Below are positions 4,080 to 37,200 of a DNA stretch of 37,583 nt, piece after piece. Each line of letters opens with the position of its first letter. Position 1 is the stretch's first letter. Source of the DNA: Basidiobolus meristosporus CBS 931.73 (taxonomy: Eukaryota; Fungi; Basidiobolomycota); assembly GCA_002104905.1 (NCBI GenBank), contig MCFE01000772.1, forward strand, positions 1 through 37,583. The letters are read 5' to 3'. Both the position numbers and the translations under genes were made by a program. The notes beneath the pieces are model-generated. The model was not told the origin of the DNA. It ran no database searches and saw nothing but the letters and a program-made list of their open reading frames with translations.

Positions 4080-4830
4080 GTGAGAACTGCAGCTTTTTTC
4101 TGACGCTTCCCTGTCACTGCCTTGGGTAGACCTTTTTCTCTTGACCTTTACCCTTACCACTGCCTAGTCTTTTGCAGCTGCTTTGACTTTGTGCTTCTTG
4201 TATGGTACTCTGTTTTCTCCTTGATGAATGCTGCACTGGTGCATCCATTTTTGCCTGCTTGTCCCTTGCCAGCACTCTTCTAACAACCTGATGTCTCCTA
4301 GCTGCTTGCTTGAAACTATCAGCTCTGCATGTGATGGGCTCCTGCAAAGACTACAGGTTTTTATCATTGTCAAGTCCTTCACTGCTACCATATCCAAGTG
4401 CTTCTTGCATTGTACTTTGCTCTCTCTTTGATGAATGATGCACTGGTGCATCTGTTCTTGCTTGCTTATCCCTGGCTAGCACTCTCCTGGCAACCTGACA
4501 TTCCCCCAAAGCTTGTTTAGAACTTTCAGCCCTGCACGTAATGGGCTCTTGAGAAAGTCATGGATTTTTATCACTGTCAAGTCCTTCACTGCTACTGTGA
4601 CTGAGTGATTCTTGTATTGAAATGCATTTTCTCCTTGATAGATTATGCTCTGATATATCTGTTTCTGCCAGCCTGTTCCATACTGGCACTCTTCTGGCAA
4701 CCTGATATTTCTTTGCCACTTGTTTGGAGCTTTTAGCCCTGCTTGTGACAGGCACCTGAGGAAGCTGCTGGTTTTTAGCCATGGTGCCCTTGTTCTTTGG
4801 CCCTTGATAGTTTTGGCTATTCCTAAGATA
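4080..4830 (-). repeat. Imperfect 207-bp (69-codon) tandem repeat, ~3.5 copies
   Basis: The anchor CACTC(T/C)..T(G/A)(G/A)CAACCTGA occurs at 4273, 4480 and 4687 (spacing 207), and GTCAAGTCCTTCACTGCTAC recurs at the same spacing. ORFs 4558-4842 and 4114-4347 give homologous peptides (SSKQVAKKYQVARRV / SFKQAARRHQVVRRV). Confidence 0.8.
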
Positions 4831-5639: not shown

Positions 5640-6374
5640 AGCAAGCTGTTGTCCAACTGTTCATCTGCTGCTGTCAGTGGTGGGGTTTGATTGGGAACCA
5701 GATAGCTTTGCTTTATTTCTTGGCAGCATATATATGGAAGTGAGTCAAACCAGAGGGGAAATGGTGTCACATATACATGTGTATGGGGTGCCACAACTTT
5801 TTAAATAATGCTTACTATGGTGGGTCATTGTTGAATCTTACATTCATGTAGGTGCAATGTCACAAATTCAAGACTGACTTAAATCCACATGGGTATTGAC
5901 CAAAAAGCTATATAATAGTGTTATATTGTTAGTGTCAAACTGCTTGCCCCATGGACAACACTATTATGATTTAACACCATAAGAGAAGAGAAAAAAGACC
6001 ATGTGGCTATTGTGGCAAGCCTCTGAACCATGAGGCATGTAGAGAAAATAGCAAGTATTACAAGGATCATGGCCAGTGTTGTGCCACACAAGTCATATTT
6101 GATCATTCACCAGTCATAACCATACCCACAATATCTTGCTGGCAACCTGATACTTCTAGAATGGCATCTGGCTGTACTTATCACCTTGCACAAACTGAGT
6201 CAGGAAAGTTTGTGATGCCTCTATGCTCAGCCCAGCATTATGAATATGGCATGCAGAGTGATAGTTCTGACTAAGAAGGTTCACTGATAGATTGTGAGCC
6301 TATTTCCCCTAGCAACAGTACCATGCATGAGCCTGGTCAGATCCCAATATGTAATGAGACATGCCTGTTGAAAC

Positions 6375-6919
6375 TGTTGTAAGAGTCTTGGAGATATTGG
6401 AAGTGATTGGGAGAACAAGTAGATTATGTGGTTTTCACTTAGTGATTTATTGAATGTAAAAGTAGTATTTATACTTTTACCTGGTCTTGGCATTACAAAC
6501 ACGTAGAATAGGTTAAGAAAGGTCCCAAGAACATGTGTGCAAAGTTTGGGGCTGTTTGGACAACTTTGAGAATTTTTCATGTTTTGGTTACCTGGTATTT
6601 TGGTGAAAATATTCTAAGTAAATCACAACAAGGAACTTGGTCAGTATTCTCTAGGATTTGAAGGTAATGATCTAAGTGACTAAGTTAGGTGAATATTTAG
6701 GTGTAAATACAAATTTTTACAACAGAACATGTGTGCAAAGTTTGGGGCTGTTTGGACAACTTTGAGAATTTTCATGTTCTGGGTACCTGGTATTTTGGTG
6801 AAAATATTCTAAGTAAATCCTAACAAGGAATTTGGTCAGTATTCTCTAGGATTTGAAGGTGATGATCTAAGGGACTAAGTTAGGTGAATATTTAGGTGGA
6901 ATTACGAATTTTTACAACA
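6375..6919 (-). repeat. Compound copia A LTR: full copy 6375-6724 plus a 195-bp LTR 5' part at 6725-6919
   Basis: GAACATGTGTGCAAAGTTTGGGGCTG...TTTTTACAACA occurs twice, ending at 6724 and 6919. Confidence 0.9.
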
Positions 6920-7898
6920 CTCCTACTCAGCTAAATGTTCATACTGACTAGTCCTAATTTTGACCTAAATATTCAAACTTGTCTCTAGCTAATGGTTTGG
7001 TAACCATGTCTGCAATCATTTCATCTGTAGGACAGTAAACTAAGCTAACTAAGTTATTCTCTATAGCTTCATGTATGAAATGATGTCTAATATCTATGTG
7101 CTTGGTTCTAGCATGAAAAGTTGGATTTCTACCTAATTGTATACATCCTTGATTATCTTGAAATAAAGTAATAGGCGTTTTTTGACATAGGCCTAAATCT
7201 GTAAAGAGCTTTCTTAACCACATTGCTTCTTTTGTAGCTTCACAGGCTGCCATATACTCTGCCTCTGTAGTAGAAAGTGCTACGGTTGGTTGCTTTCTTG
7301 AATTCCATGAAATTGCTCCTTTACAGTAAAGAAAGGTGTAACCTGTGGTGGATCTTCTGTCTTCTAAATTTTGTCCCCAATCTGCATCAGAGTATCCCAC
7401 AAGATCTTGTTCTGAATCCTTATAAGTGTATCTCAAGCAAATATCAGCAGTTCCTTTTAGGTATCTAAAAATTTGCTTAACTGCTGCAATATGATCAGAT
7501 CCATAGTTCTGATTATGTTGGCTGACAACTCCCACTGAAAATGAGATATCTGGACATGTTCCAAGCATGATATACATCAGAATGCCAACCATAGATTGAT
7601 AAGGAAAGTCAGGGCTTTCAGATGGCACCAAGCTCTCTTGATTTGGTTGAGTTTTGACCAAGTTAAGGTTTGTCTCCGTTGGGGTAGCTGCCGGTTTACA
7701 GTCTTACATTTTGTACTTCTTTAGTATATCTTGAATATACTTGGATTGGCTTAAGGTAATAGTCTGGGTACTTCTGTCTATGGAGAACTTAATCCCTAAG
7801 TAGTAACTAAGTCCTCCTAGATTGGACATCTTGAACTCCTTAGATAGGCTGGATTTAGTCTCTTCAAATGTTTCTAGGTTATTGGTGGCTCTAATAAG
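6375..7898 (-). mobile_element. 5'-truncated Ty1/copia family A element (RT C-terminus, RNase H, PPT, compound 3' LTR)
   Basis: ORF 6954-7661 contains YSDADW, STTEAEY, DNQG, HIDIRHHF and ADMVTK. The PPT GCTGAGTAGGAG abuts TGTTG at 6919. Homology to copia A RT stops at ~7898. Confidence 0.95.
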
Positions 7899-8199
7899 AT
7901 CTAAAACAATTATTGGATACAGAAGGTCCCCTAACCTAGGAGACATAATTAAATGCATGAATAAGGGAATACAAGCCACCAACCAGGTTGGAAAACATTC
8001 TAGACTACAGGAAAGGGGTACTCCTAACCCATTAAACAATCACATCTTGAAGAAAAGAAAAATTGTTTAAGGGGATCTAACAGAAGAACCTGTATTTAAC
8101 TACTGGAGCCTGATGAGGACGTAACAGTTGAAATAACCTTGGGTTATTGCCCCAATAGTTATTGAAAACTAAACACGCTCTCTCTGTGCAAAGAGAACA

Positions 8200-9240
8200 G
8201 AACAGATAATTCTCCCTAATATTCTATCAGAATAAAAAAGTCCTTTACTTTCTGATAAGACCTTTGAACTCCGCTCCAATCACAAGCAAAAAATTCATTT
8301 TGCCTATAAACCTTTACCTTAGCACCAGATGGATTCCCACTGAGCAAGTATTCTGCTAGCAAATCCTACTAACCACTGATTCTCATCAGCCTGAATCTGC
8401 CACCAATCTTTCAGTATCAGAGCAGCAATATGATGGTGGTCTTACTGACATCTGGGCCTATATGACCATCCCATCTGCATAGCTACCTGTATCTATTGCT
8501 GGATGAATTTTGTATGCTATCCTGCAGTATTCTAGTAAATGACAATCATTTCAAAGTTTAGACTATATCTGCATCAGAGATACCCAGTCATCATCAAAAT
8601 AGCTGGCTCTTCTGGGTGCAATGGACAGTATTGCTTTTAAATGTACAAGATCCAGGGGATTTACTCCATAACTCACACACATCATTACTATCTAACAACC
8701 AATACTAAGGATATTATCTTCCTACAGAGTGAATGTATCAAAGGCAGTATGCAATAGCAACAAAATTAGCAGACTTTAAGCCATTAGTCAGAATATGAAG
8801 TTGATTGGAAACTAGATATAGTTGAGATAGATGGTATCTGTTAAAGCAAATGCCATCCAGTGGGAGCAATGCAATTGTGTTTCAACAATATCCATATAAT
8901 AGTAACCAAGTTGTACATGGAGCATTTCAAGCAGAGTGAGCCCTTTCAGATACCAGAGAAATACAAAAGAATTGTCAGGATACTACAGAGTATAGCTACC
9001 CAAAGTACTATGCATAGGCTCCAATCAATATTCATATGCACATGCAACAATACAAATACAGGGCTGGATGAACTACATATGTATTTATTCAAGTGGCCTT
9101 TTGAAGCCATTTCTACCAAAAGTACATTAAAAGCATTGGGAATCATATGTTGACATTGTAGAAGTACTTATCCAGAAGTAGATCAGCAATGCCAACTTAC
9201 ACTTCTACAGCTTTAATCTCTATGAAAAATAATTTGGTCC
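8200..9240 (+). pseudogene. CMC/CACTA(EnSpm)-like DDE transposase remnant
   Basis: Decayed motifs occur in the expected order: DGFPLSK..S.(W)PLIL..LNL (from 8328), TSGP..P..L.SYL..LLDE, IIKIAGSSG.NGQY..Y.IQG, GAMQL.FNN, GWMNYICIYSSGLL.PFLP....HW. These match the recalled Tnp2/CACTA-like pattern (DGF..WP..NLP; GP..P; KxxGHNxxxC; D.MH; W..W...YS..LL..LP...HW). Confidence 0.75.
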
Positions 9241-10399: not shown

Positions 10400-11245
10400 C
10401 TGGCAGCATATACATCTTGTAAACATATGCTTAGTTGCTGCCATTGCTTCCATAATATGGTTCCATACCTCCTAAATATCCACAAAGAGCTCTCTGGTAT
10501 TTGGCCAATATATTCCTTCTCCCTGCTGGATTCTAGTCCCTTTTATAGGTGTGTTCTGGCTCTTGTTTGTGTGAGTTCCACAATGAATGGTGTAGAAATT
10601 GGCTGTGACAAAGAGAAATCTGGCATACCTTGGTAGAGTTTTCCTAATAAGAATTAGCTGTATGTTGCACCCAACCCAACTTTGCATTACTTAACTAATT
10701 ACCCATGCATTGAGGCTGCTTAGCTTCTTAATGCCATAGGCATAGGTGTCTGCATGTGCACATTTGTCCTCAGTACCTTACAACTCTTGCTGGCTGTCCT
10801 CCATGTACCAACTCATCACATCCATGACAGACTGAAAGGTAACATTCTTGATGAGATTGGGATATGGTAGTACCTGCAACTTGGCTTATCTTCCTATCTC
10901 CCCACACATCTGCTCTACAGGTAACTCCCAACAGGTGAAGCAAGATCCAATACTCTCAACACACTCAGTAAGATGGAGTAGCAAATGGATACAGTAGCAG
11001 CAGAGATGTACACATTTGGCTTTATGCTTGTAGTATACCCATTCAAATCCCATCACAAACTCTTCATGCAGAAGCTATAGATGCGTCAAGTTGGCATTGG
11101 TGATCTGCTTCTGGATAAATATTCCTACAATGTTCAAATGTGACTCCCAATGCTTCCAATGTACTCTTGGTAGAAATGTATTCAGAAGGCCACTGGAATA
11201 AATACATATCCAGTTCATCCAGTCCTCACACTTGTATTGTACATA
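10400..11245 (-). pseudogene. CMC/CACTA-like transposase remnant, C-terminal half
   Basis: EDWMNWICIYSSGLLNTFLPRVHWKHW is an inverted homologue of 9050-9230. It is followed by FEWVYYKH...CIHLLLHLTECVESIGSCFTCWELPVEQMCG, matching the fungal CACTA-like HxLLH..D.I...GP....W.FPMER.CG motif. Confidence 0.8.
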
Positions 11246-11594
11246 TGTTGTAAAAATTTGAGTTTCCACCAAAATATTCACCTAACTTAGTCACTTAGAT
11301 CATCACCTTCAAATCCTAGAGAATACTGACCAAATTCCTTGTTGGGATTTACTTAGAATATTTTCACCAAAATACCAGGTACCCAGAACATGAAAATTCT
11401 CAAAGTTGTCCAAACAGCCCCAAACTTTGCACACATGTTCTTGGGACCTTCCTTAACCTATTCTACGTGTTTGTAATGCCAAGACCAGGTAAAAGTATAA
11501 ATACTACTTTTACATTCAATAAATCATTAAGTGAAAACCACATAATCTACTTGTTCTCCAAATCACTTCCAATATCTCCAAGACTCTTACAACA
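11246..11594 (+). repeat. Copia A 5' LTR
   Basis: TGTTG...CAACA, 349 bp, followed immediately by the PBS. Confidence 0.97.
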
Positions 11595-11608
11595 GGTTAT
11601 GAGCCCTG
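11595..11608 (+). promoter_or_regulatory. Primer-binding site GGTTATGAGCCCTG (internal half of tRNAi-Met)
   Basis: Reverse complement of CAGGGCTCATAACC, the anticodon stem-loop of fungal initiator tRNA-Met. This is the half-tRNA priming type known from Ty5 and Drosophila copia. Confidence 0.88.
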
Positions 11609-14128
11609 AGCTGTCACTCTCTGCAATGTCTACTACTGCTACTACTGGGATTTTTCCCTCTGCTGGAAAGTTGGATGGATCTAACTACCAAGTGTGGAAG
11701 GTGAAGATGAAGATGCTGCTACAAGAAAGAGGCCTTTGGGATATTGTCATGGGAGAAGAATGCCCTCCTAAAAACATGGGAGAGGAAGCCTTAAAGTACC
11801 AGAAGAAAGAACAAGGTGCCTTTAACTGCATTTGCCTTAATGTCAAGGACAAATTGCTAATTCAATGCTCAAGAGCAAAAACGGCAAAGAATGCCTGAAG
11901 GCATTAGAGGACACCTACCATTCATGTTCAGCTGCCAAGAAAATGTATCTGAGATGAAAATTCTTTACTACAAAGATGCTGCCAGGAGAAGAAATGAAAA
12001 ATCTAATTAACAGAATTACCCTGCTGGTAGATGAGATGGAATCTGTGGGTGTACCAACTACTGGTGAGGATGTGATAGTTACCATCCTGAATAGCCTGAC
12101 AGACAAGTTTCAAGGCCTTGTATCAGCCCTAGAGTCCAGAATTGAAGATTTGATCTTAAATTACGTATATGGAGGGCTCCTAGATGAAGAATTAAGAAAA
12201 TCAAGCGCAAATCCAAAGGAAGAAGAAAATGCTTTAATAAGCAATGATAACCAACAAAGGAGGTACCCAAGACCCTACAAAGGCAACAGCAACCTGTTTT
12301 GTAACTACTGCAAAAGGAAAGGACACACATCAGACCAGTGTCTCAGAAAGAAAGATAATCAGCAAAAGAAGCCTGAATATGGAAATGCTGCAACAACTGA
12401 AGATAGACTATTCATATCTGCACTAAATATGACCACAAACAAGGATTCTCAGACGTGGTATATTGACTCTGGAGCTTCTCAACACTTTACACACCAAAAA
12501 GAACTTTTTACCCAATATCAAGAAATTCCAATTAAGAAAGTTTTCATGGGTGACAATAGAACACTTGATGCAGTGGGAGAAGGAACTATCCAAGTAAACC
12601 TTAGAAGCAGTGAAGGAAGCCATACACTGACCTTTAAAGAAGTACTCTATGTACCAGAAATAGCCAAGAACCTACTATCTGTAAGCAAGGCCACAGCAGA
12701 AGGACTCAGTTTCAGTTTTGACAATTCTGGATGCAGGATCACTGATCAAAATGGTGCACATATTGCTTCAGGCATCAGAGATCAGAATCTATACAAGTTG
12801 ACTTATATTCCATCATATCTGGAAGCCAATATAAGTAACTTAAATGAAGAAACACCAATGCTTTGGCACAGGAGATTTGGACACATCAATTTTGATTATT
12901 TGCATAAAATGATCAAAGATCAGCTAATTTCTGGAGTGAAAATTGATCCCCCAGCTAATTTGGAGCACTGTGAAACCTGCATATATGGAAACAAGCCAGA
13001 CAACTGTTCAAGAGCTCTGGGTTAATCAAAATTAAGGAAAAATTAGATCTAATTCACTCAGATCTGTGTGGACCTATGCAAAATTTATCCTAAGGTGGGA
13101 TGAAGTATTTGATCACTTTTATTGATGATTATACAAGATACACATGGGTCTACTTCATGGAGAGGAAAGAAGAAGCTCTGTCTAAGTTCTGGGAGTTTAA
13201 AGCCATGGTGGAGAGAGAAACTGGTCAAAAAATCTAGAACATACACTCTGACAATGGTGGAGAATATACTTCAAAACTCTTCATCCACTTCTGCAAAATT
13301 CACGGGATAAAGCAAGAAACTACTGTACCATACTCCCCACAGCAAAATGGAGTAGCAGAACAAGCTAACAGATCAATAATTGATATGGCAAGATCTATGA
13401 TCCATGATCAAAAATTATCCTATGATTTTTGGGCGGAATCAGTTGCCACTGCTGTATATCTTAAAAATAGGAGTTATAGCAGAATACTTTGTGATTCTAC
13501 TCCATTTGAAGCATGGTATGGATACAAACCAAGTGCAGAACATCTAAGAATATTTGGGTGTACAGCATATGCCAAAAAACTGGCCGGAAATCAGTCAAAA
13601 TTTGAGCCAAAAAGTGTAAAATACATATTTTTGGGCTACTGCAATGAGAGTAAGACATACAGACTCTACAATACCAAAGCAAAGAAGCTGATCAAGTCCA
13701 GGGATGTGTTGTTTGATGAAAATTCAAAATTTTCACAAAAAATGACATCAGATGATGACAAAAATCTGATCACAAGTCCACCAATTGTCAGGATTGAATC
13801 AGAGCAAAACAATTAAATTTTTCAATCCAGAGGACTCTACAACCGTGGATCAGCCAGAATCAGTGCCCAGGTATATCCCCAAAGTGATCATTCCAGTATC
13901 AAATGCCCAGAGATCCAATTGGACAAGAAATAGCCCAAATTACTATATTAATGTGGGTACAAACTTAGCCTATGCCTATTCAGTCCATATTGATAAGCCC
14001 CAGACTGTAAAAGAGGCCCTAAATAGCCCTCTTACAAGGTTTTGGAGATCTGCAATGACTGAGGAATATAAGGCCCTGACAGAAAATCAAACTTGGGACT
14101 TAGTCATATTACCAATCAACCAAAAATC

Positions 14129-15160
14129 AATTGCTCCTTTACAGTAAAGAAAGGTGTATCCTGTGGTGGATCTTCTGTCTTCCAAATTTTGTCCCCAATC
14201 AGCATCAGAGTATCCCACAAGATCCTGTTCTGAATCCTTATAAGTGTATCTTAAGCAAATATCAGCAGTTCCTTTTAGGTATCTAAAAATCCGCTAAACT
14301 GCTGCAATATGATCAGATCCATAGTTCTGATTATGTTGGCTGACAACTCCCACTGAATATGAGATATCTGGACATGTTCCAAGCATAGTATACATCAGAC
14401 TGCTGAACATAGATTGATAAGGAAAGTCAGGGCTTTCAGATGGCACCATGCTCTCTTGATTTGGTTGAGTTTTGACCAAGTTAAGGTTTGTCTCCATTGG
14501 GGTAACTGCCGGTTTACAGTCTTCCATTTTGTACTTCTTTAGTATATCTTGAATATACTTGGATTGGCTTAGGGTAATAGTCTGGGTACTTCTGTCTATG
14601 GAGAACTTAATCCCTAAGTAGTAACTAAGTCCTCCTAGATTGGACATCTTGAACTCCTTAGATAGGCTGGATTTAGTCTCTTCCAATGTTGCTAGATTAT
14701 TGGCAGCTATAATAAGATCATCCACATATAGAGCTAATAGAACTGGATTTGCTCTATCTGGCTTATAATATATACTATAGTCAGCATTACTCCTTTTGAA
14801 ACTCAAAGATTCCAAATAAGAATCTATCTTGCAATTCCAGGCTATTGGTGATTGTTTGAGACCATATAGTGACTTTTTAAGCTTGCAGACCAAATGGGGG
14901 TTATCTTGGTCAACAAACCCATCAGGCTGCTGCATATACACATTCTCATCAAGCTCTCCATTCAAAAATGCAGTTTTTACATCCATTTGATGAATAAAAA
15001 ACTTATATTTGGCTGCAACAGCCAATATTAATCTGATGGAATTAAACTCGGCTATTGGTGCAAAGGTCTCAGTATAGTCAAGTCCTTATGTTTGAGAGTA
15101 TCCTTTGGCTACAAGCCTTGCTTTGTATCTTTCAGTTGTGCCATCAGCCTTGTATTTTGT
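14129..15160 (-). repeat. 1032-bp inverted duplication of copia A RT (partner 15341-16372)
   Basis: Minus-strand ORF 14294-15025 is nearly identical to plus-strand ORF 15476-16384; 16 mismatches in the 280 bp compared by hand. Confidence 0.97.
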
Positions 15161-15320
15161 GCCTATTCAGTCCATATTGATGAACCCCAGACTGTAAAAG
15201 AGGCCCTAAATAGCTCTCAGACAAGGTTTTGGAGATCTGCAATGACTGAGGAATATCAGGCCCTGATGGAAAATCAAACTTGGGACTTAGTCAAATTACC
15301 AATCAACCAAAAATCAATTG
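15160..15320 (+). repeat. 161-bp direct duplication of 13973-14133
   Basis: TGCCTATTCAGTCCATATTGAT...CAAAAATCAATTG occurs twice, with 9 mismatches. Confidence 0.95.
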
Positions 15321-16764
15321 GATGCAGATGGGTCTTCAAGACAAAATTCAAGGCTGATGGCACAACTGAAAGATACAAAGCAAGACTTGTAGCCAAAGGA
15401 TACTCTCAAGCAAAAGGACTTGACTATACTGAGACCTTTGCATCAGTAGCCAAGTTTAATTCCATCAGATAAATATTGGCTATTGCAGCCAAATATAAGT
15501 TTATTATTCATCAAATGGATGTAAAAACTGCATTTTTGAATGGAGAACTTGATGAGGACGTGTATATGGACCAGCCTGATGGGTTTGTTGACCAAGATAA
15601 CCCCCATTTGGTCTGCAAGTGTAAAAAGTCACTATATGGTCTCAAACAATCACCAAGAGCCCGGAATTGCAAGATAGATTCTTATTTGGAATCTTTGAGT
15701 TTCAAAAGGAGTAATGCTGACTATAGTATATACCATAAGCCAGATAGAGCAAATCCAGTTCTATTAGCTCTATATGTGGATGATCTTATTATAGCTGCCA
15801 ATAATCTAGCAACATTGGAAGAGACTAAATCCAGCCTATCTAAGGAGTTCAAGATGTCCAATCTAGGAGGACTTAGTTACTACTTAGGGATTAAGTTCTC
15901 CATAGACAGAAGTACCCAGACTATTACCCTAAGCCAATCCAAGTATATTCAAGATATACTAAAGAAGTACAAAATGGAAGACTGTAAACCGGCAGCTACC
16001 CCAATGGAGACAAACCTTAACTTGGTCAAAACTCAACCAAATCAAGAGAGCATGGTGCCATCTGAAAGCCCTGACTTTCCTTATCAATCTATGGCTGGCA
16101 GTCTGATGTATATCATGCTTGGAGCACATCCAGATATCTCATATTCAGTGGGAGTTGTCTGCCAACATAATCAGAACTATGGATCTGATCATATTGCAGC
16201 AGTTAAGCGGATTTTTAGATACCTAAAAGGAACTGCTGATATTTGCTTAAGATACACTTATAAGGACTCAGAACAAGATCTTGTGGGATACTCTGATACA
16301 GATTGGGGACAAAATTTAGAAGACAGAAGATCCACCACAGGATACACCTTTCTTTACTGTAAAGGAGCAATTTCATGGAATTAAAGAAAGCAACCAACCG
16401 TAGCACTTTCCACCACAGAGGCAGAGTATAAGGCAGCCTGTGAAGCTACAAAACAAGCAATGTGGTTAAGAAAGCTGTTTACAGATTTAGGCCTATGTCA
16501 AAAAACACCTATTACTTTATTTCAAGATACTCAAGGATGTATACAATTAGGTAGAAATCCAACTTTTCATGCTAGAACCAAGCACATAGATATTAAACAT
16601 CATTTCATACGTGAAGCTATAGAGAATAACTTAGTTAGCTTAGTTTACTGTCCTATAGATGAAATGATTGCAGACATGGTTACCAAACCATTAGCTAGAG
16701 ACAAGTTTGAATATATTAGGTCAAAATTAGGACTAGTCAGTATGAGCATTTAGCTGAGTGGGAG

Positions 16765-17113
16765 TGTTGTAAAAATTTGCATTTCCATCTAAATATTCAC
16801 ATAACTTAGTCACTTAGATCATTACCTTCAAATCCTAGAGAATACTGACCAAATTCCTTGTTGGGATTTACTTAGAATATTTTCACCAAAATACCAGGTA
16901 CCCAGAACATGAAAATTCTCAAAGTTGTCCAAACAGCCCCAAACTTTGCACACATGTTCTTGGGACCTTCCTTAACCTATTCTACGTGTTTGTAATGCCA
17001 AGACCAGGTAAAAGTATAAATACTACTTTTACATTCAATAAATCATTAAGTAAAAACCACATAATATACTTGTCCTCCCAGTCACTTCCAATATCTCCAA
17101 GACTCTTACAACA
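16765..17113 (+). repeat. Copia A 3' LTR (preceded by PPT GCTGAGTGGGAG)
   Basis: 349 bp, TGTTG...CAACA, ~97% identical to the 5' LTR. Confidence 0.97.
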
Positions 17114-17395
17114 AATACTTACCTAGCTTAGTTACTTTGATCATCATCTACTAGTCTTAGAGAATACTGGACAGATTCCAGGTACCCAGAACATGTAAAT
17201 TTGTAAGATTATTCAAACAGCCCCAAGCTTTGCACACATGTTCTTGGGACCTTCATAGGCATATTCTATGTGTTTATTTTGCCAAGACCAAGTAAAAGTA
17301 AAAATGCCACTTTTATTTTCAGTAAATTATACTGTGAAAACCCCATAATCTACTTGCTCACCAAATCACTCCCAATATCTCCAAGACTCTTCAAA
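17114..17395 (+). repeat. Older copia A LTR lacking its first ~28 bp, with an internal ~40-bp deletion
   Basis: Collinear, diverged homology (GCACACATGTTCTTGGGACCTTC; CCAATATCTCCAAGACTCTT) directly abutting the young 3' LTR. Confidence 0.88.
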
Positions 17396-18896
17396 ATGTA
17401 TCCAAGAGACCCTAAAGCTTGCGCACAATCCTCAAGATCCTGTTTAAAGCATTTGTATTCATATGCATACAAAGCTTGCAGGAAATTTCTGGAACTCTAT
17501 GGCACTATCTGGCACTATAATTTCTACCATAATGCCAATGGTAAGATATAGTTACTGGTAGTTTTACTCAATCTTACTTATGTTGCTCAGAATAGTGCTT
17601 TTCTTGCTGTATTTGCTCTTCATAATGCTCCATAAGCATTTCTCTAAGTGGATGTCATCTTGAATGAATATACTGTGCATTGATAAGTATCCTATCCTAT
17701 ATATGCAAAGTCTGCCATATAGTTCTCCCCTCTACTGAGCTCTGGACAATTCTCTACCCAGAGTTCCTTGTTATGCCTACTTTCAGCAAAGAGCCCACTC
17801 AACCAGATGATGTTACCCTCAATGTCAGACAGTGCTTGAAACTTCACACAGTGTGCCTTGTACTTGCCAGAATAAAAGTGCCTCTGCCCTTTAGAAGGTC
17901 TGTAATCCTGAATGGGAAGGTATCTAAAAGACTCCTTATATGGAACCTGTTGCTGAACACTCTTGGATATGGAAGTCTATTAGAGCTTCTGAACCTAGTA
18001 TTCCAAGCTTGCTCTAAGTCATTCATACTCTCTGCAAGGTGTTTCTTCATTGCTGTCAGCTGGGAGTGAAAGCTTCTAGGACTTTTGTTGACATGGATGG
18101 TGGGATAAAAGCTTGTAAGGCAATAGTTCTTGTAATAGCAGAAAAACTTAACAAGGGATCTCCTTGAGTAGATTGAGGTAGATGGTCCACAGTGTTTGGT
18201 ATAGATATCCTCTGGAGTGCAAAAAGGAAATCCAGTGGTAGTGATGGGATTGATGAGAAAAGTCCATTCAGATGAGTAAGTCATATTAAGATTGGTAGGT
18301 GATTGGGCTGAGGTGATTCAAATTGCTTTGGCACAATCAGCTTTATTCATCTAATTTTCCATGCATTATGATTAAATCTCCATCAATTACCATGTATCCC
18401 ATCATTATGTTGCAAAAATTATCCTCAAACAATGACTTGGTATTTTGATTGACGCTTTACTCACAAGTCTATAATCAAACTGGATATCTGCAATTGATGG
18501 GATCCAAGATGTGTTAATGCAATCCAAGATGCATCATGCACAATATATGGATATCAACAATGAGCTGAGAGTAAGGGGATTTGATGAGGAAGCCATGCAG
18601 GAACAATTTTGCATGCAGTTTGCTCAGTACAGGCTGGATGGGTTTGTTTATACCTTGACTTTGGGAACCAAAGAGATTTTGAATGAGTTTTTGCCTTAAA
18701 TGACTAATAGACTTGTTCTGTTGGATAGTGCCATATAGTGCCAGTGATTGCCGCACTTCTTCCAGAGCTGTGCCCAAGAAAATGCAATTGATTATCTCAA
18801 GGATATATTGCAAAAATGAGGTCCTGGACCTTGCAGCTAAAATTGAAAACCAGGACACATGGAAACCTGGAGTGAGCAATGGCATAAGGCCCATTG

Positions 18897-23755: not shown

Positions 23756-26700
23756 TGTTGCAAGTCTTGATATAAGAGTTGTCGAGGAAGAGGGAGTTTA
23801 GCTAGTATTGTATTTACTAAAACTTCAACTGATTTTTATTCAGGTTCCAGCAGCTCATTTTTTACATTTTGCCAGATCAATTACTTAATTATTGTATTTC
23901 CTAATGTAGGTTGTGACTGATGACTCATTTGATTACATCACCATCACCCAATAAGATCCAACTTAGTATATCTATTTCTGTTGGATAAGGATCTGCTGAT
24001 TCATTTGCTGACTAATGCTACTGACTTGATCGGTAACACTGATATAGTGGTAGGCTAAACATATAACTAAATGATTGACTGAAAACTAATCTACATTAAA
24101 CATTCAAGCGGTATATCTTAACATTCTCCCCTACTAAGATTGAGAGGGTCCTCCTAAATCTCTATTCTTGTGATACAAATATCTTCATGGCTCAGTACTG
24201 TTGGCAAGTCTTGCAAGCCTGAGTCTGTCTCTATGAGCTAAATCTTCCAGGATATTCCCTTGTTTGTTCACTAGTTGGTAATTTGAAAGTGAACATCCTC
24301 TGATGATCTTATATGGTCCCATGCATTGTGGCTCAGACTTCTTCCAAGTGTTGTTTCTCAGCAACACAAAGTTCCCAAATGTCAATGCTGTTGAAATACT
24401 GAACTATTTGGTATCATTCAGCAGCTGAAAATCTACTTAACATTTCTAGAATAGTTTTGATCATTGTAGGATCATTTTGCAGCCCAACCTTGCCAGTTTC
24501 TTCAGATCTATGTTCCTATGATTATTCCCCTACAGTCAGGATCAAATTAACACTTTTTACCAAACATTATGTACTAGCCTTGAAACTGTTACAGAATATT
24601 CCTGAATGTCCAGAAACCCTCCTTACTTAGTGTTACAGCTGTATCACTTCTACAAAGGAATATAGACTGAGCTTCTTTTCTAATAAACAACAGTTCAACT
24701 ATTTTCACTATTTCTTGATAAATTCCTTGTATTCATATCACTTCTTAAATTGCAACAGGTTATGAGCCATGATTGCCTTGATCTATTCTAAAGATGACTT
24801 CTACCAGCAACAGAACAATACAAGCATCTTCCCTGTAAGATACTGATCCTCTTTATGAATAAACAACTGCTTAACCATTATCACTCTTTCTTGATAAGTT
24901 CCTTATATTCAAATCACTTCTTAAATTACAACATATGCTTCTGGTGATATAGTCTTATCAGGTTTCTGCTTCATCTGTTGTGCACTTTGAGATACTTTAG
25001 CCTGTGCCTCTTATTGTGTTTATTCCAGCTGTTGGTGTCTACTTGGCTGACTGAGCTCATCTTCTAAGGCATCTATAAGCTATGGTTGTGTCCTTCAATT
25101 CCAAGATGTCCTTATTCATGGTGTAGCTTATATATTAAATCCAAGCAAGCAACATAAGGGTAATATGCAATAGGGCTTCCATCAACAATTTGTTAAAGTG
25201 TTTTATCCTGTACCACAAACTTGCTGGCTTCATCCTGGATTATGATCTTGATCTCTTCATCCATGTTTTTAGGAATGTCTAGGTCCTGCAAGTACCCTGG
25301 TAATCAGCTAGGCCAATCTGATTCATGCCCCAAGCTGAGTTGTGCAACTTGTTTTAATATTGATAAGGCATCAGCAACTGTTTTGTTTTTCTCAGGGCAG
25401 TAGACAATCTCCAAATCAAATTGCTGAATGTATTCACTCCACCTTACCATTCTTCTGGAGAGTATCTTCTGAGTAAATATATACTTCAGTGAGGTGTGAT
25501 CAGTCTTCACAGTGCACTTGACTCCTTTAATATAGCATCTCCACATCTTTCAAGCAGTGTATTATAGCAAGCTTCTCCTTTTCATGCACTGGATAGTTCT
25601 GCTCTGCTGGGTCCAGTTTCTTGGACTCAATAGCAAATGTTGAGTCCTTTCCCTCATGTTCCTGTCTCTGTACTCCACCAATTGCATAGTCTGAAGCATC
25701 CATGCACAGAGTAAGCTCTTTTCTGAAGTCCAGGATTCTTAAGCTTGGCCACTTATCAAGTTCATTCTTGAGCATTTGAAAGGCAGTTTCACATGCTATG
25801 TTCCACTTCATGGTGTTGTCTTTCTGGAGAATATCAGTTAAAGGGGCTATAATACTTGCAAAGGACTTGACAAATCTCAAATGCTAGGAAACCATTCAAG
25901 GGAATGATCTGAGCTCTGATATGCTATGAGGCTGCTTCAGATTCTTGATGACTTCAACCTTTTTGGGGTGAAAGGTTATTCCTGTGCTAGTCACTATGTG
26001 TCCCAGGTATTCAAAATGTTCCTTCAAGAATTCATATTTTGCTAGCTTGCTATATAGCTTGTTCTCTCTTTGCTTCTTCAAGACCTTTACAATGTACCAA
26101 GTGTTCTGCTTCTGTCTTGCTATATATCAAGATGTCATCTAGGTAGATTCCCACATACTTTTCTTAGTATTCCTGGAGAACTGTTTGCATCAAGGATATA
26201 TATATTGCTGGGGCATTGGTGAGGCCAAAACTCATGACTAGATACTCATATTGTCCTTATCTGGTCCTGAATGCTGCCTTAGGGATGTCTGCTGGTTTCA
26301 CCCTAATCTGGTTGTATCCTGACATAATGTAAATCTTGCTGAATATGGTAGCTCCATTGAGTTGGTCCAAAAGCTCATCAATACAAGGTATTGGGTGCTT
26401 ATTCTTCCCTTTAACCAAGTTGTAGGCTCTGTAGTCAATGCACATCCCAAGTGTAATATCTTTCTTTTTCACAAAAAGTACTGGTGCACCCCAAAGTGAC
26501 TTGCTGGGTCTGATGTATCCTTGCTCCAATAACTGATCTATTTGTCTCTTCATCTCTTCCAAATCCAATGAACTTATTCTGTAGGGTGTCTTACTCACTG
26601 GAGGACTATCTCCTGTGTCAATGGCATGATCCATGTCTCAGACTAGTGGTAGGGTTGCAAGTTCCTCTAGAAGTATATCTGCATATTCCCTCAAAAGAGT

Positions 26701-27160
26701 CTGCACCTTCTAGGGTGCTGAAGTAGAGGAATCCTCCTTTAATACTGCCATGGGGAACATTGGGGTACCTTTTCTAAGTGCTCTACAGAGCTGTATATTG
26801 TTAAGCTCACTTGTTTCATAAACACTGGAATTGACAAAGTTAAAATCCAGTCTGGCAGGTAATAACACATAGGTCTTGTTGTCCTTCTGGATCTGAGTAG
26901 CATGGGTTCTCCAGTTGATTGATGGATTACAACAGAACAGCCAGGTTTTTTCAAGTACAAGGTCAAACTTGCAGTTCCCAAATATATAGGCCTGAAGGTC
27001 TTCTTCATAGTCATTGATCTTCATCCTTACTGGCTGAGTAATATGGTTGATAATGTGAGAGTTCCCATCTGCTTTTGAGACTGAAGTTGATTTGGTTGGC
27101 TCCAAGTTGATTCCAGCCTTCAAATAAAATTGCTGAGTCAATCATGCAGAAATTGATATA
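23756..27160 (-). mobile_element. Ty3/gypsy (family C) 3' portion: PR-RT-RH-deleted IN, PPT, and 3' LTR 23756-24123
   Basis: CMIDSA (PR), [74 protein letters not shown], and GPY. PPT AGTAGGGGAGAA precedes the 368-bp LTR. There are many stops and frameshifts. Confidence 0.92.
24389..24933 (+). mobile_element. Internally deleted copia B derivative (369-bp 5' LTR, PBS, ~85 bp, ~90-bp 3' end of the 3' LTR)
   Basis: LTR 24389-24757 has the same length as 34233-34601 and is homologous to it. PBS GGTTATGAGCC is at 24758 and the second LTR end CAACA at 24933. Flanks are AATGC/TATGC (4/5 TSD), and removing the insert restores the gypsy IN frame (KPDKTISPEA|LTFGNFVLLR). Confidence 0.88.
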
Positions 27161-27235
27161 TTTAGAAGGATCTAATTGAGTAAGGCTAATGCAATCAAAT
27201 GTGTCTTCACCCACAACATACATTTGGAAATACAA

Positions 27236-30057
27236 TCAGTCAGCAATTGATCCAGCAAACTGTATATAAGGAGCTGCTGGAACCTAAATAAACATCAGTT
27301 CAAGGATTGGTGAATATAACCCTAGCTAAACTCCCTGTCCTTCTACAACTCTTATATCAGGACTTGCAACAATTAGAGAGAAATAGAAGTATGAAGTAAG
27401 ATCTAATTGGGTGATTCTGATGTAACTAAATGAGTCACTAGAACAACCTATATTAGGAAATAAAATTAGCAGTAATTGATCTGGCAAAATGTATAAAAGG
27501 AACAGCTGGAACCTTAATAATAATCAGTTGAGGCTTGAGTGAATACAATTCTAGCTTAACTTCTTATTCCCCAACACTCTTATAACAAGACTTGTAACAT
27601 TGGTAGCAGCAATAACCAGAAACCCCCCTCCTGAAGAAAGAAGATGCCTCCCTCAAGATGTCAGAAAATCAAGAAAAGAAGAATGCTATGCAACAAATCC
27701 TGGCCTAGCAGCAACAGTTACTCCAGATCCTTAGCCAGCAGCAACAAGGAATGACAACCATGGCACAAATAAGTCTCCCTGAAGATGTCAGGAAACCAAG
27801 AATGGAAGAATGCTCTGCAGCAAATACTGTCCCAACTGCAACAGTTACCCCAAATCTTAAGCCAGCAGCAACAAGGAATGACTACCACAGCCCAGATCCA
27901 CCAAGGTGTATCAAGAACAACTTTAGTGTGAAGGTCAACCAGTACTATTGTAGAATCAATGAAACTTTAGGAGGTTGGCTCTTTTGGATTGAAGAATTTT
28001 TCAAGGCTAACAGAATTGGCCAAGAACGCAAGTTACATTATGTAGCCTCTTACCTGGCAGATGCAGCTTAACAGTGGTATCACAATAAGATCAGGTCAGC
28101 CATTGTGATGGGCTGCTCTACTATTTCAACCTGTGATGTGTTTGTGTTGGAGATTCAGGATGCCATTGAACCACCCTGCAAGCAGACACTAAATATGAAG
28201 GAAGCCAAGCACACTCAAGCATAAAGGAGTGGTTTAAGAATACATCTATGAGTATAGAAGTCTACTTGTACAAATTGAAAGATTGAACCCCTTGGATCAA
28301 GTTGAATCATTTATTGATTGGTTGAAAGTACAAACTTGCAAGGAAGTGAATTAACAAAGACCGCAGACTATTGAAGAAGCCATCAAGATTACCATTGACT
28401 ATGACTCTGCTATGCTTTGAGTTGGGAAGCCCACAATGACTAATCAGAGATACCATAATCACTATGAAAGAAGACCATCAGAAGCAGTGCCAATGGAAAT
28501 AGTTGTTACGCAGAAGAATCCCACTTCAGATGAACAGGCTTTGCCTTAATTGACACCAGCAAGGACATACTGCAAAGTACTGCCAGTGGAATAAAAAACG
28601 GACCCCAGTCAACAAGAATTTTCAACCATATTGAAGCCCTTAAGCATAGTAATGTGGAGGATGAACTTGAAGAAGACTCAGAACGTACCTCTCATATGAC
28701 AGAAGAATACTTGTCCCAAAGGACTTCAAACTCAAGGAAGCTAATATACTTTGTGGAGTTGTCAGTAGACTCTCTGCAAAGCTCATAATTGGCACAGTAG
28801 GATTGCCTGAGTATATGTTAGAACAATTTGCCTTGAGAGCTGGAATCAACTTGGAACCCACCAAATTAGTTTCAGTTGCACAAGCTAATGGGAACACTCA
28901 TATAATCAACCATATTACTCAGCCAGTAACAATGAAGATCAATAGCTATGAAGAAGACCCACATGCATATATCTGGGAACTATAAGTTAGACCTTGCACT
29001 TGGAAAAACCTTGCTATTTTGCTGAAATCCATCAGTCAACTGGAGGACTGGTGCTACCCAGGTCTAGAAGGACATGAAGACATATGAGCTATTACCTGCT
29101 AAACTGGATTTTTACTAGGTCAATTCCATTGTGTGTGAAACAAGTGAACTTAGCAAATAGCAACTCTGTAGAGCCTTTGGGGAAAGGACCCAGATCTTAC
29201 TCATAGTTGTAATACAGGAAGATTTCTCTGCTGCAGCACCCCATAAGATCTAAATTCTTATGAGATAATATCCAGACATGTTTCCATATGCATATGTATT
29301 CCTACCACTAGTCATAGATTTGGATTGTGCCATTGATATTGGAGATAGCGCTCCAGTGAGCACAACACCTTAAAGAATGAGTCTCTTAGAGTTGGAAGAG
29401 ATGAAGAGACAAATAGATCAGTTATTGGAGCAAGGATATATCATACCCAGCAAGTCATTCTGGTGAGCACTAGTACTTATTGAGAAAAAGAAGGATGGAC
29501 CGCTTAGGATGTGCATTGACAACCAAGCCCTGAACTCAGTTATCATGAATAATAAGTACCCCATACATTGGATTGATGAGCTTTTGGACCAACTCAATGA
29601 AGCTACCATATTCAGGAAGATTGAATTCATGTCAGGATACATCAAATTAGGGTGAAACAAGAAGACATCCCTAAGATGGCATTTAGGACCAGATATGGAC
29701 ACTACAAGTACCAGTAATGTGTTTTGGCCTTACCAATGTCCCTGCAACATTCATGACCCTGATGCAAACTATCTTCCAGGAGTACTTGGACAAGTTTGTG
29801 GTAATCTACCTAGATGTCATATTGACAGACAGGAAGACTGAAGTAGACCACATGGTGCATATTGAAAATATCTTAAATATGCCAGAGAGAACAGGCTATA
29901 TTAAAAGCTAGCAAAGTGCAAATTCTTGAAAGAACACCTTCATTTTCTGAGACACATAGTGACTAGCACAGGAGTGACCTTAGACCCCTAGAAGATTAAA
30001 GTCATAAAAAATCTGAAGTAGCCACTTTGCATCTCAGAACTTACATCATTCCTTGAG
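27236..30057 (+). mobile_element. Ty3/gypsy family C, plus-strand 5' portion (LTR pieces 27236-27371 and ~27378-27599, PBS, gag, PR, RT N-terminal part)
   Basis: LTR end CTTGTAACA at 27599 is followed by TTGGTAGCAGC. Gag LGGWLFWIEEFF...KLHYVASYLADAA; RT MCFGLTNVPATF...YLDVIL. Heavily decayed. Confidence 0.88.
27600..27611 (+). promoter_or_regulatory. Gypsy primer-binding site (T)TGGTAGCAGCA, complementary to a tRNA 3' end (tRNAi-Met-like)
   Basis: Directly follows the LTR; the same sequence occurs inverted at 31861-31871 next to the other 5' LTR. Confidence 0.7.
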
Positions 30058-32989: not shown

Positions 32990-34232
32990 TTAGAAGGCTG
33001 GGCTGAATCTTAAGGTTTCACAGACTTTCCTGACTCAGTTTGTGCAAGTGGACATGTCTAACCATATGCTGTTGTAGAAGTATCAAGTGGCCAGCAAGAT
33101 AATGCTGGTTCAGTAGTGACTGGTAAATGGTCAATATGACATGCGTGGCAAAACACGGGCCATGATTCTTGTAATACTACCTATGCTGTCTGCATGCTTC
33201 ATGGCTGAGATGCATGCAACAACAGTCACAAAGCCTTTTTACTCTTCTTTTGATCATGGGGCAAACAGTTTGACACTCAACAACATAATGCTATTATATC
33301 ATATTTTTGTCAATACTCATGTGAATTCAAGAAAGTCTTGGATTTGAGACTTTGCACCTGCATGAATGTAAGCTTCAATAATGACTCACCATAATAAGCA
33401 TTATTAATAAAGATGACTGAAGGGAATAATGCAAACTCCTCAGGCTCACAGTCAAGTAGACAATTGGGAAGCTATGCATAGCTGCAAGCTGACCTTATTA
33501 GTGAGGCAGATGAGAATGTAGCAAAAGCAGTGCCCTCAGTTGAAGGCCAGCAAGTGGCCATCATAACATCACCACCACGTGGTTTTGGGCCAGCATTTGT
33601 ATGCTGATTAAGTTACTCAAGAATAGCAGAAACTATCAAAGGCAGAAGACTAAGGGTGCAATGGCTAAAAATCTGTGACTTCCTCAAGACCCATCACAAG
33701 CAGAGCCAAAAGCTCCAAACAAGCATCATAGGGGCATCAGGTAGCTGGGAGAGTGCTGATAAGGGAAAAGCAGGCAGACAGAGATGCACCAGCACAACAT
33801 TTACCAAGTAAAAAGCGTAGTTCTATTTGAAAAGCACTTGGTTAAAGTAGCAATGAAGGACCTGGCAGCAATAAAATACAAAGCTGCCTCAGGAGCCATC
33901 ACAGGATGGACTGAGTGCTTGAAATAAGAAGGTAAGGAGCATTAGGTTGCCTGTAGAGTGCCAACAAGGGACCAGCAGGCCAGAACAGATGCAGCAGAGC
34001 AGCATATATCAAGGAGAAAATGTAACTTAGTACAACAAGCACTCAGACAAAGCAGCAGTGAATGACCTGGCAGTGATCAAGAACAAGGTAAAGGGGAAAA
34101 GTTCTACCCAAGCCGGAGATAGGGTAGTGTGAAAAAACCAGCAGTTCTGGCCAAGTAACACCATGAGCCCAGAACAGACTGAATCCCATTATAGCCAAGT
34201 TGAATTATCAATAAGAGAACAGCTGTTATTAC
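32990..34232 (+). mobile_element. Second, internally deleted copy of repeat U (two 207-type units)
   Basis: Inverted homology to 6240-4000, with a ~600-bp internal deletion relative to the left copy; cut on the right by the copia B LTR. Confidence 0.65.
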
Positions 34233-37200
34233 TGTTGCAATTTAAGAAGTGATTTGGATATAAGGAACTTATCAAGAAATAGTGATAATAGTTGAACTGT
34301 TGTTTATTCATAAAGAAGCTCAGTATTTATACCTTTGTAGAAGTAATACAGCTGCAACACTAAGTAGGGAGGGTTTCTCAATATTCAGGAGCATTCTGTA
34401 ACAGTTTCAGGGTTAGTACATAATGTTTGGTAATAGTGCTAATTTGATCCTGACTATAGGGGAATAATCATAAGATCATATATCTGGAGAAAGTGGCGAA
34501 GTAAAGGCAGTAAATGAGTCCTACAGTGACTAAGACTAGCCTAGAATTGTTAAGTAAATTTTTAGCTGCTGAATGATACCAAATAGTCCAATATTTCAAC
34601 ACTCCCCCTCAACTAAATAATTTCTTAATCCCAATTTCTCTCTAAGGATCTCAAACTGTGGCCTAGCTAGTGGTTTTGTCAATATGTCTGCCACCATTTT
34701 GTCAGTTGGGCAGTAAACCAGCTCTACTAAGTTATTTTCTACAGCTTCCCTCACAAAGTGATGCTGTATATCAATGTGCTTAGTTCTGGCATGATTAGTA
34801 GGATTTCTAGCTAATGAAATACAACTTTGATTATCCTTGTAAATACATGTTGGTTCACCTGAATTAAAACCTAAGTCTTTGAATAATTTTCGTAGCCATA
34901 TAGCCTCCTTAGTTGCTTGACATGCAGCCATATATTTGGCTTCAGTTGTAGATAGTGCCACAGTTGGTTGTTTCTTGCAATTCCAAGTAATAGCTGCACC
35001 AGCATAAAGAAATACATAGCCTGTGGTAGAGCGTCTGTCAATCAGATCTCTACCCCAATCTGAATCACTATAACCATCAAATTTTTGCCTATTAGCTGCT
35101 CCAGAGTATTCCAGTACCATATTTATGGTACCTTGTAGATATCTGAAAATCCGCTTAACTGCTGCAATTTGATCTGATCCATAATTCTGCATGAATTGAC
35201 TGACTATTCCAACTGCTACTGCAATATCTGGACGTGTAGACACCATCAAGTACATTAGGCTACCGACCATTGATTGATAGGGAAAGTTTTGGTCCATATT
35301 TGAGCCGTTTTCATCCATAACTGGCTGAGATTTGCTTAATTTCAGGTTATTGTCCATAGGGGTTGCTGCAGGTTTGCAATTTTCCATTTTGAAGCGTCTA
35401 AGAATGTCCCTGATGTACTTAGACTGATTCAGCACAATTTTCTGCGTAGGTATGTCAAATTTGACCTCAATTCCAAGAAAATAGCTCAATTTTCCAAGAT
35501 CTTTCATCTCAAACTTGCTGAAGAGATCTGATTTCGTCTGTTTAAGTGCCTCTTGATCACTTGTAGCTATAATTAGGTCGTCCACATAAAGAACTAGGAT
35601 GATCACACCCTTTTTGAGCTGTTTCACATATATACTGTGATCTGCAGTGCTACGAGAGAACCCAATTTCCTCTAGATATGTGTCAATCTTGTTATACCAT
35701 GCTCTGGGTGCCTGCTTAAGCCCATACAACAATTTTCTAAGTTTGCACACCTTATGGGGGCTTTTTGGATCGGTAAAACCTTCTGGTTGCTCCATATATA
35801 TAGTTTCTTGCAAATCCCCATTTAGAAAGGCTGTTTTGACGTCCATTTGGTGTAGATCTAGACTGTGTACAGCTGCCAGGGCTAGAACTGTCCTAATAGA
35901 GTTAAACTTGGCAACCGGAGCAAATGTTTCCTTAAAGTCTAGTCCCTGGATCTGGGAATAGCCTTTAGCTACCAGTCTAGCCTTGTACTTATCAACGGCA
36001 CCATTTGAGGTTATCTTGATCTTGTAGACCCATCTACATCCTATTGGCTTTCTCCCATTTGGTAAATCTACCAGTTCCCACGTTTTTGCCTTGATCAGTG
36101 ATTGGTACTCCTCCTGCATGGCTTGTTGCCACTTAGTAGCATCTGGACCTTGCATTGCCTGTTCCAGATTCTGAGGTTTGGCACATAAGGCAAGATAAGC
36201 TTCTTCATGATCATTGGATGTCTGCCACCAGGATCCAGGGGCATTTCTTATTCTGGTGGATCTCCTAACTGGGATAATCTGTTCTGATCTGGAACTGGTA
36301 GAAGTATCTTCCATCTCTGGCTGGATTTGGTACGTATCTTCTTCATTTGTGTTGATTGCATCATCAGGCAGCTGGCCAATGATTTCTGTGGCTTTCTGAT
36401 CTGAATTCTCCTCAAATACAACGTCCCTGCTCTTGATCAGCTTCTGAATTTCGCCATCATACACTCTATACCCTTTAGTATCTTCACAATACCCAAGAAA
36501 GATCCCTTTTCTACTCTTTGGTTCCAACTTTGAGCGTTTTTTGTCAGGGATGTGATAAAAGACATCACTGCCAAAGATCCTGAGGTGCTGGAGATCTGGT
36601 TTTTTGCCTGTATATGCTTCAAAGGGTGTAGAATCACGTAGTGCTGTTGTTGGGCATCTGTTCTTGATGTATACAGCGGTAGCAACAGATTCAGCCCAAA
36701 ACTTGTAGTCCATTCCCTTATCATGTAGCATAGATCTTCCCATCTCTACTATTGTTCTGTTTGCACGTTCTGCTACTCCATTTTGCTGTGGAGTATGAGG
36801 AACTGTGGTCTGTTGAAGTATACCAGTAGACAAGCAGTATTTTGCAAACTCCTTTGAGCAGTATTCTCCTCCATTGTCACTTCGTAGTACCTTCAATTTA
36901 CACCCAGTTTGTGTTTCTGCCATGTTCTTGAAGTGCTTAAACGTCTCTAAAGCTTCATCCTTTGTTTTGAGGAAGTACACCCATGTATATCTTGTCTTGT
37001 CATCAATAAACGTCATAAAGTATCTCTTGGCTCCAAAGGACAGTGTTCTCATGGGGCCACATATGTCTGAGTGTACAATAGCCAATATTTCGGTGGTATT
37101 GATGCCTTCTGAGCTCTTGAAACGTTGCCTAGCTTGTTTGCCATATGAACATCCTTTACAAACATTCAATTTGATCGGAATTGAGTATTTTAGGCCCAAA

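Follow-up and report, generated by a model that had tools for sequence, protein, structure and literature searches.

Inverted-duplication copies of transposons are textbook natural triggers of RNA silencing, and very few of them have been traced to the molecular accident from which they originated. As described in two papers that cite Slotkin et al. 2003 and 2005 (PMC11624286, PMC9868043), Mu killer (Muk) of maize is an inverted duplication of a part of MuDR, which gives rise to hairpin RNA, small interfering RNAs (siRNAs), and heritable silencing. A second system is Nmy of Drosophila simulans, a retro-derived inverted repeat acting as a hairpin-RNA suppressor of Dox (PMC2062475; PMC10292708). 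Here, we examined a 37,583-nt stretch of the genome of the fungus Basidiobolus meristosporus CBS 931.73 (contig MCFE01000772.1), which is referred to below as the window. It is a nest of copia-type elements with a G+C content of about 40%. One Ty1/copia copy, located at 11246-17113, carries between its long terminal repeats (LTRs) an inverted duplication of its own reverse transcriptase (RT) region. We consider it probable that this is an old inverted duplication in one element that is now dead, that it arose in a single event of two template switches on microhomology and underwent later gene conversion, and that its hairpin is a by-product.

The repeat search revealed a single inverted pair within 11246-17113, namely 14129-15160 versus 15341-16372, with arms of 1032 nt and 180 nt between them. 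The statistics of the arm, B/B', and LTR pairs are gapless mismatch counts made on the assembled sequence of the 37.6-kb window. The arms differ at 38 of 1032 positions (96.32% identity; 26 transitions, 12 transversions, no indels). An alignment of 1 kb at 96% identity with no gap is much more than chance would produce. The two copies of a direct duplication, B (13973-14133) and B' (15160-15320), show 9 mismatches over 161 positions (94.41% identity; 5 transitions, 4 transversions, no indels), and the two LTRs show 11 over 349 (96.85% identity; 6 transitions, 5 transversions, no indels). The element is composed of the following features, given in window positions.

11246-11594, plus strand: 5' LTR of 349 bp, TGTTG...CAACA, with TATAAATA at 11496-11503; 96.85% identical to the 3' LTR, gapless.
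11595-11608, plus strand: word resembling a primer-binding site (PBS), GGTTATGAGCCCTG, read in the sequence.
11467-13972, plus strand: segment A with gag, protease-like beta-barrel, pre-integrase, and integrase SH3-like parts, in several open reading frames (ORFs) split by frame changes and stops (ORFs, Pfam).
13973-14133, plus strand: segment B, left copy of the 161-bp direct duplication, at the integrase/RT boundary; 9 mismatches to B'.
14129-15160, minus strand: left arm, an inverted copy of segment C, with RVT_2 on the minus strand and private stops at the equivalents of 15413 and 16205 (repeat search, Pfam).
14129-14133, no strand assigned: left junction, a 5-bp microhomology, AATTG, with which B ends and the inverted arm begins (sequence).
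15160-15320, plus strand: segment B', the second, right-hand copy of the 161-bp duplication; it begins with T (15160), and this base provides the 1 bp of microhomology for the right junction (sequence).
15321-15340, plus strand: segment x, 20 nt of canonical sequence linking B' to C; B' and x form the 180-nt loop (sequence).
15341-16372, plus strand: right arm, which is segment C, the canonical RT (RVT_2) in sense orientation, with a single private stop at 15470-15472 (Pfam, codon comparison).
15735-16093, no strand assigned: conversion-like tract in right-arm coordinates (left-arm mirror 14408-14766), with 1 mismatch in 359 nt (mismatch distribution).
16373-16755, plus strand: segment D, the remaining pol (RNase H side), which ends at the purine tract (ORFs, comparison with the relative at 34590-37583).
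16756-16764, plus strand: purine-rich word resembling a polypurine tract (PPT), GAGTGGGAG, directly 5' of the 3' LTR (sequence).
16765-17113, plus strand: 3' LTR (repeat search, sequence).

An earlier note on this DNA, made from the letters alone, had given coordinates for the arms, the spacer, and the duplication together with both junctions (AATTG of 5 bp and about 1 bp), and all of these were exact when compared with the repeat search and the sequence. The arm identity of about 94% reported there was too low, the value found being 96.3%, while the remark that the arms are closer in their centre agrees well with the tract of 1 mismatch in 359 nt. The LTRs, PBS, and PPT listed in the same note were also recovered, as 349-bp TG...CA LTRs with TATAAATA, a PBS-like word, and a short purine tract.

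The Pfam matches within the element appear in the order Retrotran_gag_2, Pol_BBD, gag_pre-integrs, SH3_retrovirus, and RVT_2, which is the order of Ty1/copia elements, and paired TG...CA LTRs enclose the internal region as in other members of this group. No Pfam match to the integrase core or to RNase H was found among the element ORFs of at least 60 aa. RVT_2 was detected on both arms, on opposite strands, with E values of 1.8e-56 (minus-strand ORF 14294-15025) and 1.3e-53 (15476-16384). The nearest database relative of the RT ORF is 70% identical, and the family has no entry in the protein collection. The PBS-like word GGTTATGAGCCCTG is, as we take it, complementary to the anticodon stem-loop of the eukaryotic initiator tRNA-Met, as in the priming of Drosophila copia and yeast Ty5. 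The window was searched for a tRNA gene that could be compared with this word, and none was found.

Segments B', x, and C are read without interruption from the C-terminal region of the integrase into the N-terminus of the RT. In addition, a relative located in the same window (34590-37583; 57% identical) displays integrase SH3, B, RT, and RNase H with no inversion. For these two reasons, A-B-x-C-D is taken as the canonical order, with a length of about 4.68 kb (11246-14133 plus 15321-17113). The copy examined here has the order A-B-inv(C)-B'-x-C-D, and its 1187 extra bases (14134-15320) correspond to inv(C) and B'.

Fold-back artefacts of long-read libraries are perfect palindromes with zero spacer. 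In this copy, the arms differ at 38 sites and B and B' at 9, and the spacer comprises 180 nt. Homology at the joins amounts to 5 bp and 1 bp, and overlap or k-mer assembly is unable to produce joins of this kind. Also, the structure lies well inside the window, with 14 kb to the closer end, and represents a coherent product of two switches. These features argue against an assembly artefact, that is, an inversion present in the assembled contig alone, which might otherwise be suspected in a family that is extremely repeated (summed word depths of 1e5-1e6) and at a locus whose read contigs cannot bridge the junctions. The reads used for the locus were Logan contigs of about 60 nt from DNA runs of one sample; the joints of these contigs were short-sided (20-27 nt), as typical for repeats, and were given no weight. 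The inverted duplication is confirmed in the assembled sequence, and an artefact appears most improbable.

Two successive template switches are indicated by the inverted segment taken together with its surroundings. B and B' flank it as a direct duplication, and microhomology is present at both junctions (AATTG, 5 bp; T, 1 bp), which contain neither filler nor transposon ends. The duplicated parts are of one age, with divergence values of 3.7% for the arms and 5.6% for B/B' (Fisher p = 0.27). This anatomy and the two microhomology junctions support the template-switch origin that had been suggested in the earlier note. Both junctions are preserved, and they allow the accident to be reconstructed: two switches, one with 5 bp of homology and the other with 1 bp.

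In the simplest version of the event, segments D, C, x, and B' would have been copied first in the course of minus-strand cDNA synthesis, which proceeds from right to left. A fold-back of 180 nt would then have brought the 3' end of the cDNA onto its own strand, where it would have primed synthesis, with 1 bp of homology, at the position corresponding to 15341. Copying of 1032 nt of its own strand by the polymerase would have produced the inverted arm. A return to the template at 14133 via AATTG, 161 nt behind the point of departure, would have caused B to be copied twice, after which synthesis would have continued into A. The same steps mirrored on the plus strand would fit equally well. Alternatively, the product could stem from template switching during chromosomal replication shortly after the copy had inserted. 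Self-priming of minus-strand cDNA and RT switches on only 2 nt of complementarity are known as retroviral side reactions (PMC4668388). We modestly favour an event that occurred during the reverse transcription that made this copy, and self-priming of minus-strand cDNA would be its simplest form.

LINE-mediated insertion of a copia RNA fragment was also considered and was rejected, as the 3' end of the arm carries no poly(A). Searches of metagenome contigs with exact words of the left and right junctions returned no matches.

The identity between the two arms is mosaic. The tract 15735-16093 contains 1 mismatch in 359 nt compared with about 5.4% elsewhere in the arms (permutation P = 5e-5, the chance of a span of such length with no more than one mismatch). 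Only one close copy of the family, N (6371-7901, minus strand), is present in the window, and its overlap with the arms covers their distal 591 nt. Within 15782-16093 (312 nt), the numbers of private changes are 1 in the left arm, 0 in the right arm, and 10 in N (P = 1.3e-4 against a star); by this count, the left and right arms are sisters in the central 312 nt. The simplest reading of the central tract is arm-to-arm gene conversion after the event. A mutational cold spot was ruled out for this tract, since N differs from the arms at 10-11 sites within 15782-16093.

The pattern in the distal part of the arms is different. Within 16094-16372 (279 nt), 9 private changes belong to the left arm, 7 to the right arm, and 6 to N, which is star-like (p = 0.73); the left arm differs here from the right arm at 16 sites and from N at 15. 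Such a pattern may be explained by an inverted arm that came from another member of the family, through cDNA capture at a break or through break-induced replication templated by the inverted N at 6371-7901. A star, however, is also expected from a burst of equal-aged copies. The identity between the LTRs of the element (96.8%) is close to that between these LTRs and the LTR of N (95.7-96.0%), as such a burst would give. N lies in the required orientation and just 6 kb off, but it now lacks the 441 nt nearest to the loop, ending at the position that corresponds to 15782. With the central tract left aside, the arms and B/B' look slightly more diverged than the LTRs (5.5% versus 3.2%, p = 0.10), as would suit a foreign arm, while over the shared 591 nt the left arm shows no special affinity to N (26 differences, compared with 17 between the left and right arms). 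Simple fragment capture also leaves the 161-bp flanking duplication unexplained. Taken together, we regard a foreign origin of the inverted arm as unlikely and prefer two template switches within one element.

Some other features of the arms and of N were observed. The arm differences are clustered at 16094-16128, with four consecutive mismatches at 16094-16097 followed by those at 16113-16114 and 16124-16128, and N agrees partly with each arm in this cluster. The cluster could be due to error-prone synthesis or to small patches of ectopic conversion. The internal part of N covers RT-RNase H from 7901 to 6969, and its 3' LTR is cut at about LTR position 196 (6919-6724). This truncated LTR abuts a second, complete LTR (6724-6375) and the first 4 nt of the PBS, where the homology ends. 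N thus represents a further rearranged or partly tandem LTR arrangement in the same family.

No stop codon is common to both arms. The right arm contains one (15470) and the left arm two (the equivalents of 15413 and 16205), which indicates that the RT was open at the time of the duplication; by this measure, the source element was coding-competent at that time. The codons that differ between the arms comprise 24 nonsynonymous and 6 synonymous ones. These data indicate that the arms have decayed neutrally since the duplication, and the copy is now dead, as judged from its reading frames. The gag-pol of the copy is broken into eight or more ORF pieces. Frame arithmetic on the ORFs gave a minimum of three frame changes (near 11898/11976, 13310/13385, and 13785/13816), and in-frame stops occur at 15470, at 16382, and once between 13025 and 13122. 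RIP-like mutation (of the repeat-induced point mutation type) between the arms was ruled out: their 26 transitions and 12 transversions run in mixed directions, and CpG is involved in only 3 of the 38 differences.

The divergence values are 3.7% for the arms, 5.6% for B/B', and 3.2% for the LTRs (Fisher p = 0.74 for arms versus LTRs, 0.27 for arms versus B/B', and 0.22 for the third pair, none of them significant), and the internal duplicates have diverged at 1.25 times the rate of the LTRs (95% confidence interval 0.64-2.67). By this comparison, the event appears not detectably younger than the LTR pair. Together with an RT that was open at the duplication, these values fit an accident at or near the retrotransposition that made the copy. 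The earlier note had described the arms as more diverged than the LTRs and had derived the inverted arm from another family member on this ground. These figures speak against that claim, and the left arm is no closer to N than to its partner.

Several points weigh against an accident of this kind and timing. A clean 5-bp target-site duplication was not found at the borders of the copy (upstream ACATA, downstream AATAC). The flanks are of different kinds, the upstream one being an unrelated repeat and the downstream one part of a related LTR. Given both observations, the two LTRs may not originate from one insertion, which weakens the dating based on them. Once the homogenised tract is excluded, the internal duplicates are 5.5% and the LTRs 3.2% diverged (p = 0.10), and this leaves room for a rearrangement older than this insertion or for homogenisation of the LTRs. 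The geometry is equally compatible with a reverse-transcription error and with a chromosomal replication error. A single close family copy, with an overlap of 591 nt, served for polarising the changes. Finally, the inversion is known from the assembly, and read contigs of about 60 nt are too short for bridging its junctions. With these points taken into account, a single event of two switches is still the reading that we consider probable.

As to the flanks themselves, the partial LTR at 17114-17400 belongs to a related subfamily (81-84% identical); it starts near LTR position 28 and follows directly on the 3' LTR of the copy with the hairpin. The upstream flank at 11072-11240 belongs to another repeat and is 83% identical to 9047-9213 in inverted orientation. 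This arrangement hints at recombination between elements or at nested, truncated hosts.

The minimum free energy calculated with ViennaRNA for 14129-16372 is -1862 kcal/mol, compared with -564 for a control of the same length in canonical order. In the predicted fold, the left arm has 1003 of its 1032 bases paired at the mirror position, and perfect pairing runs for up to 261 bp without a break. According to this model, a transcript running from LTR to LTR would fold into about 1 kb of double-stranded RNA (dsRNA) and would be a good Dicer substrate on paper. A dsRNA of this size had been proposed in the earlier note, and the predicted fold (-1862 kcal/mol) is in line with it. The word TATAAATA is kept in both LTRs, the PBS-like word (14 nt) follows the 5' LTR, and the short purine tract lies just ahead of the 3' LTR; the cis signals appear to be in place. 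Mobilisation of the copy, which the same note held possible, is doubtful in view of at least three frame changes, three in-frame stops, a clean target-site duplication that was not found, and a 1-kb stem that would hinder reverse transcription.

The depletion of CpG is pronounced in this family. The ratio of observed to expected CpG is 0.09 in the copia copy and 0.14 in the whole window, as compared with 0.84 in the genic first 2 kb (G+C 49%), and TpG and CpA are in excess alongside the loss of CpG. This loss is consistent with long-term cytosine methylation and deamination targeting repeats. The family is very abundant (summed word depth of 1e5-1e6 in DNA reads) and looks as if it had been silenced long ago by other means, and a decisive role of one hairpin copy in this silencing is unlikely.

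The same features bear on the possibility that the copy acts as a silencer similar to Mu killer, with transcription from the LTR, dicing of the stem, and silencing of the whole copia family in trans by the resulting siRNAs. The stem is very stable on paper, with its perfect helix of 261 bp, and a TATA box is kept in the LTRs along with the PBS-like and PPT-like words; the arms, however, span the RT alone and include no promoter. The sequencing runs found to contain this stretch are DNA runs of one sample, with no RNA run among them. At a divergence of about 4%, some 42% of the 21-nt words would, by calculation, match other copies exactly. The arms are, however, under neutral decay, and dsRNA sources are not scarce, with 24 inverted pairs of at least 150 nt between transposon copies in the window. 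Dicer, Argonaute, and RNA-dependent RNA polymerase are present in Entomophthorales relatives of Basidiobolus (bioRxiv 10.1101/2023.09.13.557621). In maize, transposon hairpin alleles do silence their own families, and antisense nested insertions are under discussion as triggers for EVD, a copia element of Arabidopsis (PMC11624286). The CpG ratio of 0.09, versus 0.84 in the neighbouring gene, nevertheless points to methylation-type silencing of the family regardless of this locus. Any siRNAs from this copy would only add to the silencing of a family that is already abundant, rich in inverted pairs, and CpG-depleted. The silencer reading, while possible, is unsupported and in our view quite improbable, and we read the hairpin as a by-product of the two switches and not as a dedicated silencer.

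A more far-reaching proposal combines origin and function. The element's own RT could have made the hairpin by fold-back of the minus-strand cDNA, the product could have integrated as a complete LTR-bounded provirus, and such errors could generally yield LTR-driven hairpin alleles that feed RNA interference against the family. We judge this proposal very unlikely as a whole. If true, it would reveal a mechanism, inherent in the element, through which a burst of copies brings about its own end, and this copy would be a fossil allele of that kind in an early-diverging fungus. With both junctions preserved and intact-looking LTRs around the hairpin, the copy is in principle well suited to the question of whether faulty reverse transcription gives rise to silencer alleles. 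For now, it is one old locus in decay, in a genome where inverted pairs of transposons abound, and a tidy structural example.

Inverted pairs among transposon copies are common in the 37.6-kb window; one of them, at 26313-29641, has 675-nt arms with 79% identity and a 2-kb spacer. The region 4154-4774 is composed of three tandem 207-bp units, 71% identical to the reference copy, and is related in inverted orientation to 33694-34080 (70-73%). A piece of a WD40-repeat gene is located at 87-674 on the minus strand. In the database, only one strong match was found for it, a Basidiobolus ranarum hypothetical protein (74% identity across 88% of the ORF), and this supports the genus Basidiobolus as the source of the window.

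With regard to its structure, the copy resembles rearrangements attributed to fork stalling and template switching or microhomology-mediated break-induced replication (FoSTeS/MMBIR) as well as self-priming or strand-switch products of retroviral RT (PMC4668388). In all of these, an inverted segment stands beside a short direct duplication, the joins show 1-5 bp of microhomology, and the inverted piece possesses neither transposon ends nor a target-site duplication. The product at this locus is compatible with either the RT of the particle or a chromosomal replicative polymerase as the responsible enzyme. In a shallow literature search, we found no fungal copia element described with a product of this kind fixed in it.

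What the copia copy has in common with the known hairpin silencers is structure only. Muk is likewise a natural rearranged transposon copy with an inverted duplication of part of its own coding region, whose read-through transcript would fold into a long hairpin homologous to its family, and the short spacer is a further common trait. Muk, however, is a derivative of a DNA transposon, contains the terminal inverted repeat and the 5' region of mudrA, makes use of a flanking promoter, and has been demonstrated to produce hairpin RNA and siRNAs and to silence heritably in trans. The copy described here is an LTR retrotransposon in a zygomycete-grade fungus, and its arms comprise the RT only, include no promoter or terminal region, and are located between the element's own LTRs. 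Nmy is similar in being retro-derived and in possessing an inverted repeat of several hundred base pairs with homology to its target, this repeat being the functional part. It differs in having arisen as a retrocopy from a host gene and in its left repeat, which was considered a secondary duplication after retrotransposition; its function, moreover, was proven genetically. For the copia copy, which is known from sequence, the target would be the transposon family itself. Finally, antisense nested or tandem insertions of EVD in Arabidopsis (PMC11624286) are retroelement inverted repeats proposed as sources of siRNA hairpins, and rearranged endogenous pararetroviruses with inverted conformations (PMC9868043) are regarded as siRNA hairpin sources against their own kind. 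Both of these cases involve two insertions or composite integrations, whereas the structure reported here is an internal inverted duplication of a single element, which points to a copying error and not to nesting.

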